Shown here: piece by piece, positions 3,594-15,595 of the stretch
Numbering within the stretch: position 1 is the first letter of the stretch
How the letters are laid out: each line of letters starts with the position of its first letter
IMG/VR virus record: IMGVR_UViG_3300025360_000021
Location: 1 to 15,922 of that record
Direction: 5' to 3' (one strand)
DNA length: 15,922 nt
Position numbers and translations under genes: made by a program
Notes under the pieces: generated by a model
What the model saw: the letters and a program-made list of their open reading frames with translations, nothing else
What the model was told of the DNA's origin: nothing
Databases searched by the model: none

Positions 3594-3606
3594 ATTAAAA
3601 ATAAAT
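3594..3606 (+). promoter_or_regulatory. Motif variant ATTAAAAATAAAT upstream of the capsid gene
   Basis: 1 mismatch to consensus; 29 nt to ATG 3636. Confidence 0.72.
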
Positions 3607-3635: not shown

Positions 3636-4022
3636 ATGGCTAGAGGGAGAGGCCTACCTAAGCCTGGAAATTCGAGGCTAGCGAAGTGGCAGGCTAAGTA
3701 CGATCCAACGGTAGTGCAAACAAGGTTCACTGAGGTACAGCCAGTTGCCGTAAGTAGGGCACAGGAGGGTATAGTAAGTATCGCAAACGTGCAATCTCTG
3801 ATAGGTGGCGTACTTGATCAGTACGGTATCGCAGGTCCAATGAGGGCAACATACATCGCCTTCGGCGAAAAGGTTTGGCACGCAACACAAAGGCTAACTG
3901 GGCAAGCGCTTGCTAACGAGGTGAATGGTCTCACGTCATACTTCCAAACCGCATTCGGTGCTAACCCAACAATACTACAGGCAATAGCCCAAGCCCTTGG
4001 CGTCAGCGGTTTGACTTACTAA
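3636..4022 (+). CDS. Major capsid protein, rudivirus (SIRV2 P134-like) fold
   Basis: 128 aa. R.AKWQAK, VL.QYGI.GP.RA.Y..FG.KV, G.AL.N..NGL..Y...AF.ANP.IL match the SIRV coat protein as recalled. Start set at MARGRG. Confidence 0.92.
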   Translation: MARGRGLPKPGNSRLAKWQAKYDPTVVQTRFTEVQPVAVSRAQEGIVSIANVQSLIGGVLDQYGIAGPMRATYIAFGEKVWHATQRLTGQALANEVNGLTSYFQTAFGANPTILQAIAQALGVSGLTY

Positions 4023-7321: not shown

Positions 7322-8002
7322 ATGGGTATTCCGTTGCCGTTGGTATCGTGTAGTGATAGTACTCTTTCACTATCCAGTTTTTCGGGAAGCGTTACTCTAA
7401 CATTGCACTGCCCTGGCGATTTGATAGAACCAACGCTGTGGAACAATAGGCGATTATGCTTGGAATACCAGTTGTGCTATCTCGGTTTGTTGATTCAGCA
7501 AATAAGTAATCAAAACCTTGGCGTTGGTGATTCATTAACGAATCAGTACAATAATGTCGTTAGTGAGTTATCGAGTTTGCCACCTGTGACGGCAGGACAG
7601 CCAGTCACTCACGAACAATTCAATGCGATTTGGGATCACATCAACCTTGCGTACAACGTATTGACTAATTTCTTCAGTATCGTGTGGGGCTATGGATCAT
7701 TACAACCTGCCCAGGTCGTTCCATATGAGAACCAGTTATTGTACGTCATCAACAACATACCGAAGAAAAAAACGATGGATCTGATGAAATCGAGTGACTG
7801 GAACGCATTGACACAAGCGTTGTACGCAATTGATCAAATATTACAATACATAAAGCAAAATTGGTTGTTACCTGCCATGCAAGGGCAAGTAACGTTTGCA
7901 GGGGTAAACGTGATTGCGACTACATCATTTAGTTCACCATCGATAACCACATCTATCACTAAGGCATCTACGTCAATGACTACGTCGGCAGGTACTGGAT
8001 AA
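7322..8002 (+). CDS. Putative fibre/structural protein with two SDWN-like repeats and a Ser/Thr-rich C-terminal tag
   Basis: PVTHEQFNAIWDHI and LMKSSDWNALTQAL; ends TTSFSSPSITTSITKASTSMTTSAGTG. Confidence 0.75.
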   Translation: MGIPLPLVSCSDSTLSLSSFSGSVTLTLHCPGDLIEPTLWNNRRLCLEYQLCYLGLLIQQISNQNLGVGDSLTNQYNNVVSELSSLPPVTAGQPVTHEQFNAIWDHINLAYNVLTNFFSIVWGYGSLQPAQVVPYENQLLYVINNIPKKKTMDLMKSSDWNALTQALYAIDQILQYIKQNWLLPAMQGQVTFAGVNVIATTSFSSPSITTSITKASTSMTTSAGTG

Positions 8003-8010
8003 TTACCGTG

Positions 8011-8023
8011 ATTAAAAACAAAT
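8011..8023 (+). promoter_or_regulatory. Conserved upstream motif ATTAAAAACAAAT
   Basis: Exact copy; 25 nt to ATG 8049. Confidence 0.8.
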
Positions 8024-8048
8024 GAGTGATTACGATTCATTGTTTTGT

Positions 8049-8222
8049 ATGAGTAACACGGTGGGCAGTGCAACGTGTAATGTAAAGGATTTAATGACTA
8101 AGCAACAACCATTCATCAAATTCCCAATAGTAACTACGTCCACATCATTTAGTTCACCATCAATATCGGTGGTTATTGCCAAGGCATCCACATCAATGAC
8201 TACGTCGGCAGGTACTGGGTAA
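8049..8222 (+). CDS. 57-aa protein consisting largely of the shared Ser/Thr-rich C-terminal tag
   Basis: ATG 8022 lies inside the motif, whereas ATG 8049 fits the 25-nt spacing. Ends TSFSSPSISVVIAKASTSMTTSAGTG with synonymous divergence from the upstream copy. Confidence 0.75.
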   Translation: MSNTVGSATCNVKDLMTKQQPFIKFPIVTTSTSFSSPSISVVIAKASTSMTTSAGTG

Positions 8223-8230
8223 CTATCGTG

Positions 8231-8243
8231 ATTAAAAACAAAT
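8231..8243 (+). promoter_or_regulatory. Conserved upstream motif ATTAAAAACAAAT
   Basis: Exact copy; 23 nt to GTG 8267. Confidence 0.8.
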
Positions 8244-8266
8244 GATTAAATGCCATTTACATCGAT

Positions 8267-10683: not shown

Positions 10684-10923
10684 ATGAGTACTAACGTGAG
10701 TGTTATCATTAGGGAGATACATAGGGCAGACGTTCCTGGGAACACACACTACATAGCAAGCGTGCAATTACTTGATGGCGAAGACGGTTGGGTAAGCCCT
10801 GCCTTTCCAGTTGATTTTCACGACAAACACGAACTAGAACGAAAAATAGCACAGGAAGTAACAATGTACGTCATGGCTAAGCAGAACTTCGGTAAGCACA
10901 TAGCCAGGGGCAGGTGGTTATGA
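10684..10923 (+). CDS. Small hypothetical protein (three strands plus helix), coupled to the large gene
   Basis: 79 aa; its TGA overlaps the next ATG (ATGA at 10920-10923). Confidence 0.78.
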   Translation: MSTNVSVIIREIHRADVPGNTHYIASVQLLDGEDGWVSPAFPVDFHDKHELERKIAQEVTMYVMAKQNFGKHIARGRWL

Positions 10924-13900
10924 GTTACATACCATTCAACATAGATGAAATCAAGGTATTAATCCAGGACAACCTAGCCAACGGCGTAATCGAGAAATCA
11001 TTATCAGAACTGAAGGAAACGGATCTAGCCAAGGCAGTCATCGAGTATGGTGGTTTAACCGATCCAATAGGGCAGTTGGAATCATGGATAGCACAGCAAT
11101 TACAATCGTTCGGTAATTGGTTGGTTCAATCATTCCAGGCAATCATTAGCCCTATCGTTTCGGCTATCAACACGGTATCGAGTTATGTGGCACAGGGGTT
11201 TGCATCGTTATCATCAATGATTACGCAATCGTTCCAGTCATTCGCATCGCAAATAACTAGTGCATTATCGAGTATCCAATCGGCATTCCAATCCTTGGGA
11301 TCAACATTCCAATCATTCGCTAGCCAATTGGGATCAACGTTACAGTCATTCTTTAGCCAAATATCGTATGCATTGACTACGGCATTCTCTCAATTATCGA
11401 GTGCATTCCAGAGTTTGGGATCACAGATCCAAGGTGCATTCTCGGGCATTGTTTCGGCATTGAGTTCCTTAGGATCCCAAGTACAATCGGCATTGAGTAA
11501 CTTCGCCAACGTACTAACACACGTTGTTTTTCCGAGTATCCAGAATTGGATCACGTCAGTCGTTAATTCTGTAATAAGTGGCTTACAGTCATTCGCAAGC
11601 CAGGCACAGACTGTCTTTAGCAACATCGTGAGTGGGATAGAGTCATTCGGCAAGACATTGGAAGGTGTACTAGGCACGTTCTGGAATGATTTACAGAATG
11701 CGTTTAGCACGATCGGTAAGTACGTAACTGGTTTCGTATCATCGATAGAGAAAGGGTTTGAGCAATTCATCAAGGATGTCCAAGCATTCGGTGGCATGAT
11801 ACAATCAACACTATCAAGCATTGGATCCCTCATTCTAAAGGGTTTCGTGGATATCGGCAGGGGATTTGAGTCGTTATTTAGCGATATTCAGAAGGTGTTT
11901 GCGGGATTCGTAAAGTTCATGGAAGGGATACCGAAGATGCTAAGTGAGATCCCAAGTAAGGTCTTTGAGGCTGTGTATAAAGCATTTTTAGACTTCCTAA
12001 AGATCACGGGCATCGATAAGGCGTTTACAATCATTGTTGATTTCTTTAGGAACGTGGCTAAGTTCTTCGAGAATTTGGGAAATAACCCAATCATTAAGGC
12101 GATAATTAAGGACTTTGAGTTGTTCGCATCGGGCATCGAAAATGCATTCACTAATTTCTATAATATATTAATAGGAATATATCACTGGATAGCTAAAGCA
12201 TTGCAATCCTTGGCAACTGATTTCATGAACACCGCTAAGTCGTTGGCAAGCAGTTTCTTGGGTTTGGGTAAGGGATTTACGTCGTTCGTTGTTGATATTA
12301 CTAAGTTCGGTGTTTCATCGCTTTACCTACCTGTGGCGATTGAGACGTTGCCGTTACTAATGACAATGAGTATTTTCAAATCGGAACCGTACATAATCAT
12401 AAAGAGTGGTGTGGATCCCATCAAAGTTGCGATTCCCGATCTAATTAATGCGTTCGGTGCTATATCGCTGATTTCGGCATCCGTGTTCGGTGTCGTGTAC
12501 GGCATAGGTGCATTGATTGAGAAAATCGGATCAGCAACTGGATCCCAAGAAATAGATTTGTCACCATTGGGATTAGGTGTAAAGCTAAGGCTTAACCTAG
12601 GCAAGCTATTGGAACCAATCGGTAACCTACTCGAAAAGGTTGGTGATGAAATAGGCAGGGGCTTAGCACTAAGCGGTTCGTTAGCGTTTATGGAACCGTT
12701 ACGTTATATATGGCGTTACGTGTGGTGGTTGGTGTTCTACGCCATGGGTATGGGAAACATGCCGTTCGAACTACCTGGACATCACGAATTGTTTGACATT
12801 GCCAGGAGGTTCGATGTTACACAAAACATAAACTATATAGCTAACACAATGATATATAGAGGCTTCCCGTACTGGTATATAGCAAAAACAATAGCATTGC
12901 CAACCACGTTCACATCTATAGACGTGGCTAATCAAGCGTTAGGTGATTTCAAAAAGGAAATACAGAATAACTACATCACGGTGGTTGATAAGTTCGGGAA
13001 TACCAGGATCATACCGATTGCACCATTGTTTGAATTGCCAACGACACACGACTTGGTTGAATTCATGCTTAGGGATTTGTTCCTACCTGCCAGGGCACCG
13101 CCTGCCGAACAACCTGCATTAGCATATCAATCATTTATCAAGGCTATGTGGGCACGTGGTGTACCACCAGACGTTGCGTACATGTACTATCTCAGGGCTT
13201 ATGAACTTCCATCAGCAACGCAAGTGTGGGATTTCACAATGAGGGCATTGTCAGGGTTTGCATGGTACGTACCACCGCAGGAAGTACAAACGTTCGCCGA
13301 ATCCGAAGCCAAAATAATCAACGCATTCGTTCCGCAGGTGCCTGCCAAGCTTAACTTCCAGTATAACCTTGTGTTGTTAGCATTGGCAGAGTATCAAAAG
13401 TGGCACGGTAGGGCTCATTTTGCTTGGATTAATGATCCAACGACTGGGAAATCATATACATCTGATGCGTGGTTGATTATTGATCAATCAGCTCACTTAC
13501 TCGATAGGACTGACATTGAGCACCTGGTACGTCATGGCATTTGGGATTACTATCAGAGGAAGTACGGTATTACTAACGAAACAACTATGTACGATGTGTT
13601 GGGTAAGGTTGTGGAACCGCAACCAACGTCACCGATTCAAATATACACGGACTACGTCACGAACGTGTTGATGGCTAGGGGCTTCCATCCGTACGTTGCA
13701 CCGTTGATAGCATTACGTAATGTCTTTGACGTAACGACTGGTGCAAAGACCTTGCTAAGGACAGGTTTGCTGAATCTGATTAGGGAGAATATTGAGTTGA
13801 TACCGATTGCGTTGCAATTAATGAGTCATTTCTTCGATGTGTCCGTGCACGTTGCTTACTTCGATATGTATAACCAAAAGTGGGTAACGGGATGGCTTAA

Positions 13901-15230
13901 TGCACCAGTCCGTTACCTGGATCCCGAGGCTAAGTTACTAGTGCTCAGGGCATTGATGGACAAAGTCAATACGTTTATGAGGTATATGTTCCGTGCACTG
14001 GAATACGGCGTTAGGGATTACCTGGTTGGTGTTAATGACTCAATAAACTACATGGTAGGGTACGTAAAAGACGTGTTGGATAAGTACTATGCACCGCTCT
14101 ATAAATCCATAACAGGCGTTGAAATGCACCTAACATGGGATTCAGCATTTAACGACGCCATAGCTAAGTACTTTGAGATAGAGCAACTGATTGGTACATT
14201 CCGTAGAATTAGGTATTATGCCAGGTATGCGTTATATAGGATCCTAGGGATCATAGGCATGGGGCTTATTCCAAAGACAGAGATTCCTAAGTATATTGAT
14301 GAATTAACAACATTAATGAAAGAAACACCACAAGCAAAGGAAGTATTCATGTTCATTTCAGACCTGGTTTATCACAGATACTTGCTTAGGAACTATGAAA
14401 CGATGGTTAGGGTTTGGTTGGGCAGGCATGCAATGACAATCGATCAAGCCTTGCAAACATTGTTGGCACAGAACATAGATCCAGACTACGCAAAAGCCTT
14501 AGTCAATGCATACGCTAGCCCGTATTATCCAACGATTGTGCAATTGATTGTAATGAGTGAGTACAACCCTGCCTTTTTGGGTAAGCTAGGGCAGGTAATA
14601 CAACTAATGAGGATTCCACAAGATTGGGCACAGATTTGGCAAGATTACGCATACATAAGGGCTTATGTTAGGTGGTTCATACGTGCATTGAATGAGGTCG
14701 TTACTGTGGTTTCCAGGATACCACTGACTGTGAAAATAGTCATGCCAATGACGCAGGGCAATAAGACGGTTACATTGCAGGATGTTGTGAATGATATGTT
14801 TAAGCAAGCACAAGCGTTTGGTTTTGATAGTACTAAGCTTAGCTTCGTTAAGGAACTAATAGACTTTAGGTACGTACTTACTCAATACAGGAATTCAATC
14901 CCAACGCCGTGGCATGCATTGAATTTAACATACTACCTGCCAGACCCTGACACGTTCATAGACAACCTATCACAGAACTGGATCATATCGCAATACGGAG
15001 TATCACTAATCAAGACACTGGCAAGGTTTAGGAAGTACGGCAGGTGGATGTTCGAGACCGTGTACTGGGCAGTCAGGGCTTATGCACGTGGTTACATGGC
15101 AGGGCAAGACCTATACCAATTCTTGCAATCCCTACAATCGTTTGGATTGTCTAAGTACGACATCGAGATGATTAGGAACTGGGCATTCGCAATGAGTTGT
15201 TACTACGGTGCATGCCAATACCCATGGTAA
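10920..15230 (+). CDS. Large virion protein with tape-measure-like amphipathic repeats, candidate terminal fibre/end-structure protein
   Basis: About 1436 aa; GGTGG SD before ATG 10920. N-terminal 7/11-residue F/L-Q-S repeats, a hydrophobic middle segment and a helical-repeat C-terminal half. Size and position are analogous to the largest rudivirus protein (SIRV2 P1070). Confidence 0.8.
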   Translation: MSYIPFNIDEIKVLIQDNLANGVIEKSLSELKETDLAKAVIEYGGLTDPIGQLESWIAQQLQSFGNWLVQSFQAIISPIVSAINTVSSYVAQGFASLSSMITQSFQSFASQITSALSSIQSAFQSLGSTFQSFASQLGSTLQSFFSQISYALTTAFSQLSSAFQSLGSQIQGAFSGIVSALSSLGSQVQSALSNFANVLTHVVFPSIQNWITSVVNSVISGLQSFASQAQTVFSNIVSGIESFGKTLEGVLGTFWNDLQNAFSTIGKYVTGFVSSIEKGFEQFIKDVQAFGGMIQSTLSSIGSLILKGFVDIGRGFESLFSDIQKVFAGFVKFMEGIPKMLSEIPSKVFEAVYKAFLDFLKITGIDKAFTIIVDFFRNVAKFFENLGNNPIIKAIIKDFELFASGIENAFTNFYNILIGIYHWIAKALQSLATDFMNTAKSLASSFLGLGKGFTSFVVDITKFGVSSLYLPVAIETLPLLMTMSIFKSEPYIIIKSGVDPIKVAIPDLINAFGAISLISASVFGVVYGIGALIEKIGSATGSQEIDLSPLGLGVKLRLNLGKLLEPIGNLLEKVGDEIGRGLALSGSLAFMEPLRYIWRYVWWLVFYAMGMGNMPFELPGHHELFDIARRFDVTQNINYIANTMIYRGFPYWYIAKTIALPTTFTSIDVANQALGDFKKEIQNNYITVVDKFGNTRIIPIAPLFELPTTHDLVEFMLRDLFLPARAPPAEQPALAYQSFIKAMWARGVPPDVAYMYYLRAYELPSATQVWDFTMRALSGFAWYVPPQEVQTFAESEAKIINAFVPQVPAKLNFQYNLVLLALAEYQKWHGRAHFAWINDPTTGKSYTSDAWLIIDQSAHLLDRTDIEHLVRHGIWDYYQRKYGITNETTMYDVLGKVVEPQPTSPIQIYTDYVTNVLMARGFHPYVAPLIALRNVFDVTTGAKTLLRTGLLNLIRENIELIPIALQLMSHFFDVSVHVAYFDMYNQKWVTGWLNAPVRYLDPEAKLLVLRALMDKVNTFMRYMFRALEYGVRDYLVGVNDSINYMVGYVKDVLDKYYAPLYKSITGVEMHLTWDSAFNDAIAKYFEIEQLIGTFRRIRYYARYALYRILGIIGMGLIPKTEIPKYIDELTTLMKETPQAKEVFMFISDLVYHRYLLRNYETMVRVWLGRHAMTIDQALQTLLAQNIDPDYAKALVNAYASPYYPTIVQLIVMSEYNPAFLGKLGQVIQLMRIPQDWAQIWQDYAYIRAYVRWFIRALNEVVTVVSRIPLTVKIVMPMTQGNKTVTLQDVVNDMFKQAQAFGFDSTKLSFVKELIDFRYVLTQYRNSIPTPWHALNLTYYLPDPDTFIDNLSQNWIISQYGVSLIKTLARFRKYGRWMFETVYWAVRAYARGYMAGQDLYQFLQSLQSFGLSKYDIEMIRNWAFAMSCYYGACQYPW

Positions 15231-15236
15231 TTACCC

Positions 15237-15249
15237 ATTAAAAACAAAT
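15237..15249 (+). promoter_or_regulatory. Conserved upstream motif ATTAAAAACAAAT
   Basis: Exact copy; 26 nt to ATG 15276. Confidence 0.8.
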
Positions 15250-15275
15250 TATACATATCATTCTATCTAGGATGT

Positions 15276-15386
15276 ATGGGTAAGTCAGGACTACCTAAGG
15301 ATGGTAAGTCCAGGTTCGAAAAGTGGTTAGCAAAGTATGATCCAGAGGTGATAAGGAAACGTTTTGAGGAATCAATGCAGGGATAA
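15276..15386 (+). CDS. 36-aa mini-paralogue of the major capsid protein N-terminal DNA-binding arm
   Basis: MGKSGLPKDGKSRFEKWLAKYDPEVIRKRFEESMQG; 18/28 identical to capsid residues 6-33; has its own motif copy; absent from the supplied ORF track. Confidence 0.8.
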   Translation: MGKSGLPKDGKSRFEKWLAKYDPEVIRKRFEESMQG

Positions 15387-15392
15387 AGGATA

Positions 15393-15407
15393 GAAAGGTT
15401 TTTAATA
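15393..15407 (+). promoter_or_regulatory. Canonical BRE-TATA promoter
   Basis: GAAAGG-TTTTTAATA ending 23 nt before ATG 15431 (leaderless spacing). Confidence 0.65.
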
Positions 15408-15430
15408 CCTGGATTTCTATTTTTCATAGT

Positions 15431-15595
15431 ATGAACACCAGATGGCTAATGAAAAAGGCACTTGATTTAGTCCTATATGGTAGATCAGCTAGGGATGTAA
15501 AGACCAAAAACGATGCATTTGATGCCCTATGGGAAATACTAATAAACATGGAATACGAACTACGCAAGAAAAACCAAACAATAAGCCCTAACTAG
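15431..15595 (+). CDS. 54-aa helical hypothetical protein
   Basis: MNTRWLMKKALDLVLYGRSARDVKTKNDAFDALWEILINMEYELRKKNQTISPN; correctly spaced promoter; below the ORF-track cutoff. Confidence 0.65.
   Translation: MNTRWLMKKALDLVLYGRSARDVKTKNDAFDALWEILINMEYELRKKNQTISPN

Follow-up and report, generated by a model that had tools for sequence, protein, structure and literature searches.

An uncultivated group of rudiviruses, which are rod-shaped archaeal viruses, carries a genuine and strongly conserved gene for a peptide of 36 amino acids, which was copied from the DNA-wrapping front end of the group's own coat protein. What the peptide does has not been tested. The gene was found in a window of 15,922 bp, which is the whole of the IMG/VR contig UViG_3300025360_000021 (41% GC). 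A megablast search of this window against 50,697 deposited phage and archaeal-virus genomes gave no nucleotide-level match. Its gene content is nevertheless that of a divergent rudivirus. The coat protein of 128 aa is encoded at 3636-4022 (+); it matches Pfam PF12193 (E = 1.2e-25) and the PDB entries 3J9X (SIRV2) and 6WQ0 (E of about 1e-22), and is 38-43% identical to all 42 deposited rudivirus coat proteins (about 43% to those of SIRV). Two GT4 glycosyltransferases (GT349 and GT360) match SIRV2 ORF335 and ORF356, respectively, and a giant gene at 10914-15230 (+) encodes a protein of 1438 aa that matches SIRV2 ORF1070, a terminal-fibre gene (tblastn to SIRV2 20505-21518, E = 4e-11). The coat protein, the glycosyltransferases and the ORF1070-like gene are in the conserved rudiviral order. 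The N-terminal third of the giant protein also matches tape-measure and tail-protein PHROGs (for example phrog_1535, 2e-20) and the Pfam Baculo_PEP_C and collagen-middle models, which are probably compositional or coiled-coil matches, and its length ranges from 1424 to 1856 aa between lineages.

To examine whether the similarity between the small ORF and the coat protein is real, each element of the preliminary description was recomputed, and all of it was reproduced. The ORF (the mini-gene) lies at 15276-15386 (+), runs from ATG to TAA and encodes 36 residues. Residues 5-32 of the peptide (the mini) align without gaps to residues 6-33 of the coat protein (the arm segment at 3651-3734), with 18/28 identical residues and 53/84 identical bases. 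Nine of the 18 identical residues use different codons, and seven of the ten replacements introduce a charged residue (P>D, N>K, A>E, T>E, Q>R, T>K and T>E). The similarity is far beyond chance, as local tblastn of the mini against the arm gave E = 6e-9, and a profile of the mini family searched against 1.84 billion proteins recovered the coat proteins of this clade at whole-library E values of 5e-7 to 5e-6. Two qualifications should be made. The peptide covers about the first 35 residues of an arm that runs on as a long helix to about residue 62 of the modelled coat protein, so that it is the front part of the arm and not all of it. Besides, the gene had been called hidden, whereas JGI gene calling lists it as a 36-aa hypothetical protein on many contigs.

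The promoter that had been described upstream of the ORF was also confirmed. An exact TTAAAAACAAAT, which is TATA/BRE-like, lies at 15238-15249 (+) and ends 26 nt before the ATG, which implies a leaderless or very short-leader mRNA. The virus-wide motif, TTAAAAAYAAAT, has 14 sites between 1503 and 15622 on both strands, of which 11 are exact against 1.25 expected (the expectation allows one mismatch). Each exact copy lies 21-29 nt before a start codon, including that of the coat gene, where the T variant is found at 3595-3606 (+). This points to leaderless or very short-leader transcripts for nearly every gene. Two copies of the motif, together with the starts of adjacent small ORFs, are spanned by a direct repeat of 128 nt (7910-8037 and 8130-8257, 80% identical and 220 nt apart) that looks like a local duplication. 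The mini-gene is followed by a short spacer (15387-15430) with two T5 tracts (15399-15403 and 15421-15425), read directly from the sequence. It is a likely oligo-T terminator of the mini transcript and a TATA-like element for the next small ORF, but this is inferred only; T-rich or hairpin-plus-T sequences follow the stop in the other lineages as well. The next small ORF (15431-15595, +) is a second conserved small gene of 54 aa with its own TATA-like element and no Pfam or PHROG match. It is 80-91% conserved in seven related loci, and a roughly 50% identical homologue sits on the opposite strand, abutting the stop of the mini-gene, in six other loci, so the neighbour has been inverted. The right end of the contig (15600-15922) is G/T-rich and poor in convincing ORFs. 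TRF found no tandem repeats there. It may approach the genome terminus or inverted terminal repeat, but the other end of the genome is not in the window for comparison.

To find out whether the ORF is a gene, relatives were collected without reference to it, using the C-terminal 400 residues of the giant protein as the query. All 36 metagenome loci that reach far enough downstream of the giant gene contained the ORF, as did the three other IMG/VR contigs that reach that far; one copy is cut at codon 35 by a contig end. Three loci without it (numbered L005, L016 and L045 in the set of loci and contigs, to which the L numbers below also refer) are uninformative, as L005 ends inside the giant gene, and L016 and L045 end about 110 and 280 nt after it, L016 just inside and L045 just past an inserted accessory ORF. 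Across 35 distinct coding sequences (26 distinct proteins) the ORF is always exactly 36 codons, with ATG or GTG as the start and the stop at the same codon. Random stops or frameshifts in relatives had been put forward beforehand as an observation that would count against a selected gene, and none was found. A few database members of the mini family have other lengths (P0002, 40 aa; P0024, 39 aa; P0026, 31 aa; P0034, 80 aa), and P0002 diverges completely after the KYDP motif. These were not traced to their contigs and may be contig ends, assembly errors, different start calls or rare disrupted copies. The promoter motif sits at the same distance from the mini-gene in every relative, whatever lies upstream, and DNA conservation collapses immediately after the stop.

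The substitution pattern, which had likewise been proposed as a check, is that of a protein under strong purifying selection. Variable columns number 19, 18 and 34 of 36 at codon positions 1, 2 and 3. Fifteen residues are invariant although they are spelled with several synonymous codons; R13 and R29 each use five, across the AGR and CGN families. Nei-Gojobori counts gave 12.5 synonymous against 1.5 non-synonymous differences to the 93% relative (dN/dS about 0.016). To the lineage whose giant protein is only 60% identical they gave 16 against 10, with 22 synonymous and 86 non-synonymous sites (about 0.05, synonymous sites saturated). These ratios were computed pairwise and not on a tree. The possibility that this is not a protein-coding gene, but a decaying fragment of a duplicated coat gene, a chance ORF, a conserved DNA or RNA element or the result of selection on the overlapping antisense ORF (15263-15427, minus strand), is therefore effectively refuted. 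In its favour, the ORF is very short, several pipelines did not call it (it was not called in L059, and the L018 variant is not on record as a called gene), and an antisense frame that shares wobble positions stays open across the ORF in all lineages. The latter is expected for this frame relationship, and as the antisense frame has a stop at its 5' end in six lineages and no conserved start, it is a by-product.

To verify whether the ORF could be the first piece of a split, frameshifted or read-through second coat protein, as might be suspected because other adnavirus families have two coat-protein paralogues (PMC12282232), coat residues 34-128 were searched by tblastn against the region from 400 nt before to 1.2 kb after every mini-gene. 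Nothing better than 18 bits (E >= 5) was obtained, in agreement with the earlier remark that no capsid similarity follows the stop. Each near-complete contig has a single copy of the C-terminal domain, and the sequence downstream of the stop differs completely between lineages (a small ORF, a methyltransferase or convergent genes). A full-length second capsid gene in close relatives, which had been named in advance as a refuting observation, was thus absent from this site and from elsewhere in the contigs examined. This indicates that the split-gene reading is effectively refuted as well.

The mini-gene always lies downstream of the giant gene and runs in the same direction. The gap is exactly 46 nt, or 0.5-1.75 kb holding one to three accessory ORFs. 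The site is an insertion hotspot, with zero to three accessory ORFs of 146-337 aa (L002, L011-L018, L020, L021, L024, L026, L029-L033 and L041), among them a D12-class N6-adenine DNA methyltransferase in L058; a Methyltransf_23 gene follows the mini-gene in L054. The profile search also revealed a subfamily of 32-33 aa in the same position in relatives of 54-60% GC, although this rests on three short contigs. In L061 it lies directly after a giant-gene homologue of 45% identity. The peptide has therefore survived a shift from 41% to 60% GC with near-complete turnover of its codons. In contigs of 57-60% GC (L062 85-3238 and L061 2755-4883) the stop of the 32-aa mini-gene overlaps the start of a gene cluster encoding proteins of 173 and 106 aa, Csf2/Cas7 (TIGR03115, 5e-15), Csf3/Cas5 (TIGR03116, 1e-20) and a CysH-like PAPS reductase (PF01507, 4e-18). 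The layout is that of a type IV-B CRISPR-Cas module, here on a rudivirus-like element. L064 also starts with a PAPS-reductase gene.

In the searches made outside this group the gene was not found. A tblastn search of the deposited genomes with the mini gave no rudivirus hit at E <= 10, but that collection is too large for so short a query. The SIRV2 arm was therefore used instead, and a single arm copy was found in each of the 42 deposited rudivirus genomes. A mini-family HMM searched against six-frame translations of SIRV2 and of the part of ARV2 examined returned the coat protein itself as the best hit and no second copy. A degenerate DNA pattern in 185,579 species genomes gave only two chance hits (Clostridium and a Verrucomicrobia MAG), so there is no cellular or proviral copy, and the same patterns in IMG/VR returned only the four contigs already known. 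The mini shares the four-residue-shorter kink (KY-DP) that is specific to the coat protein of this clade, and thus derives from that protein through one old duplication. Minis resemble each other (mean 65% in the core) more than they resemble arms (mean 53%), and pairs from the same genome are no more alike than pairs from different genomes. An apparent shared Y at one position in L054 is simply the residue common in coat arms elsewhere (L054, L064, SIRV2 and ARV2). Hence, there is no sign of ongoing gene conversion or of co-evolution with the coat arm.

The peptide has a mass of 4.2 kDa, a pI of 9.6, nine K+R and six D+E. An AlphaFold2 model made with the 26-sequence alignment (pLDDT 82) predicts a disordered tail (1-9), a helix (10-19), a break at K-Y-D and a second helix (23-34). 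The model of the coat protein shows the same elements, i.e. helix 11-21, a break and helix 24-62, followed by three more helices. This also agrees with the literature, in which the N-terminal helical arm wraps the DNA and turns it into A-form (PMC7189273; PMC5517147), as the preliminary description had stated for SIRV2, through positive residues on the phosphates (PMC12282232). Residue-level DNA contacts in SIRV2 and SSRV1 were not compared. A PDB sequence search with the mini returned nothing, and neither did Foldseek of the 36-aa model against the PDB, as expected for a two-helix peptide. The arm residues that are invariant across nine aligned rudiviral coat proteins, including SIRV2 and ARV2 (R14, K17, W18, K21 and P24), are all invariant in the mini family, as R13, K16, W17, K20 and P23. 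In our reading the basic residues fall at i, i+3 and i+7 on one helical face, and the hydrophobic face is also kept. In the second helix T and Q of the coat protein become K, R or E, as expected for a surface left exposed when the bundle is missing.

Taken together, the earlier inference that this is a selected mini-protein rather than a decayed copy is supported. The analysis demonstrates the reality of the gene, its homology to the arm, the selection on it, its conserved promoter and synteny and the retention of the invariant residues, whereas DNA binding, presence in the virion and a role in assembly are our inferences. That it is a real protein-coding gene descended from the coat arm we hold with very high confidence. 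The gene arose by partial duplication of the 5' end of the coat-protein gene in the ancestor of an uncultivated rudivirus lineage and is, in our reading, independently transcribed. As a more tentative view, which we prefer but do not hold as more likely than not, the peptide binds double-stranded DNA, or docks against coat-protein arms on DNA, in the same way as the coat arm, and would act as an accessory factor of nucleoprotein assembly. It could nucleate coating, or fill or cap arm sites where full capsomers cannot sit, such as the virion ends next to the tail-fibre complex whose gene it follows. Its place at the end of the structural gene block and the promoter motif that it has in common with the coat gene are in line with this view. 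However, no transcript, peptide, binding or virion data were obtained here, and no multichain or DNA-complex structure was predicted. The motif precedes nearly every gene on both strands and does not single out structural genes, the neighbourhood borders on accessory or counter-defence functions, and the 42 deposited rudiviruses assemble rods without a second arm copy, so the peptide is not a general requirement of rudiviral assembly. Of the functions that had been suggested earlier (end cap, pre-coating of genomes, dominant-negative inhibition and decoy), none is shown or excluded by the sequence data.

A possible but unlikely alternative is that the peptide is a free intracellular DNA-coating or regulatory peptide and not a virion component. 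It would coat replicating or incoming viral DNA, possibly driving it toward A-form, and so protect it from nucleases or defence systems or regulate when the coat protein gains access. The DNA-facing invariant basic residues are retained while the bundle that makes rigid rods is absent, the peptide carries more charged residues than the arm (15 against 9) and is more hydrophilic (GRAVY -1.2 against -0.78), and the neighbourhood often holds DNA methyltransferases and, in high-GC relatives, the type IV-B-like Cas module. On the other hand, experimental support is lacking and the net positive charge is lower than that of the arm (+3 against +5). Moreover, the conserved hydrophobic face (F/L/Y14, W17, L/I18, Y21, V/I25-26 and F30) suggests a protein partner rather than a purely DNA-bound monomer, and the accessory neighbours vary and are absent in several lineages with the 46-nt gap. 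In its most far-reaching form, equally unlikely but not excluded, the peptide would be a stand-alone DNA coat of minimal size that by itself pushes dsDNA toward A-form, making it the smallest natural A-form-inducing module. The virus would use it outside the capsid lattice to shield replicating genomes from nucleases or CRISPR effectors, or to sabotage capsid assembly of competing rudiviruses.

Still more doubtful is the possibility that the peptide is directed at the coat protein. By mimicking an arm it would bind coat-protein arms, either as a chaperone that prevents premature DNA-free polymerisation or as a dominant-negative inhibitor of a competing rudivirus (superinfection exclusion). The conserved hydrophobic face would fit, the peptide evolves more slowly than the arm (about 75% against about 57% identity between the window and the L064 lineage), and many related lineages co-occur in samples of the same series, so that competition between viruses is plausible. 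However, a dominant-negative would also poison the virus's own coat protein unless timing or specificity differs. All five clade coat arms compared share the conserved core KW-KYDP-RF, which leaves little room for discrimination, and nothing shows early expression.

Rudiviruses are the textbook case of a rod built from one coat protein whose N-terminal arm forces DNA into A-form. That this clade has kept a separately expressed, arm-only copy under strong purifying selection implies that the arm has a useful activity of its own, apart from building capsomers. As a natural peptide of 36 residues can be made by chemical synthesis, the question whether the arm alone is sufficient to bind DNA and change its form becomes directly testable. 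The peptide also offers a handle on how these rods start, end or are regulated, about which little is known, and is a clear example of a functional gene below the size at which annotation usually pays attention. In IMG, ENA and NCBI metagenome gene calls the peptide of the window is an exact member of a cluster of 34 hypothetical proteins, with sister clusters of 10, 6, 1 and 1 members, nearly all of 36 aa. None carries a name, a domain or a published description, and a literature search for an arm-only or truncated capsid paralogue in rudiviruses found nothing.

Compared with the rudivirus major capsid protein (SIRV2 P134/ORF134; PF12193), the mini is homologous to the N-terminal tail, first helix, kink and start of the long helix of the arm; DNA wrapping itself was not assayed. 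[quoted passage not shown] It also stays below the Pfam gathering threshold, as the mini of the window gave no hit and that of L054 scored 14 bits (E = 0.055) against model positions 1-31, with a cut-off of 25.2. Alpha/beta-type small acid-soluble spore proteins (SASP) of Bacillus and Clostridium offer an analogy for a free DNA coat. They are small proteins that are disordered when free, become helical on dsDNA, drive it toward A-form and protect it, and the SIRV2 structure paper drew this comparison for the coat protein. They are, however, cellular and about twice as long, and there is no sequence similarity: no Pfam family other than the coat protein appeared for the mini at E <= 10. For an assembly role, a working analogy is provided by the minor coat proteins pVII (33 aa) and pIX (32 aa) of the inoviruses (M13/Ff), very small single-helix proteins, structurally like the major coat protein, that form the cap at one end of a filamentous virion and start packaging at the DNA signal (PMC10480500). 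There is no sequence relationship. pVII and pIX are membrane-associated proteins of an ssDNA bacterial virus with a hydrophobic membrane-spanning helix of about 19-25 residues, whereas the mini, with 15 charged residues in 36, is hydrophilic, has no such helix and derives from the DNA-binding arm of its own coat protein. Finally, in the Lipothrixviridae, Ungulaviridae and Tristromaviridae a duplication of the adnavirus coat gene was also kept under selection within one genome. Those paralogues (MCP1 and MCP2) are full-length and form heterodimeric capsomers, while rudiviruses are described by ICTV as encoding a single coat protein (PMC12282232). Here, only about a quarter of the gene was kept.
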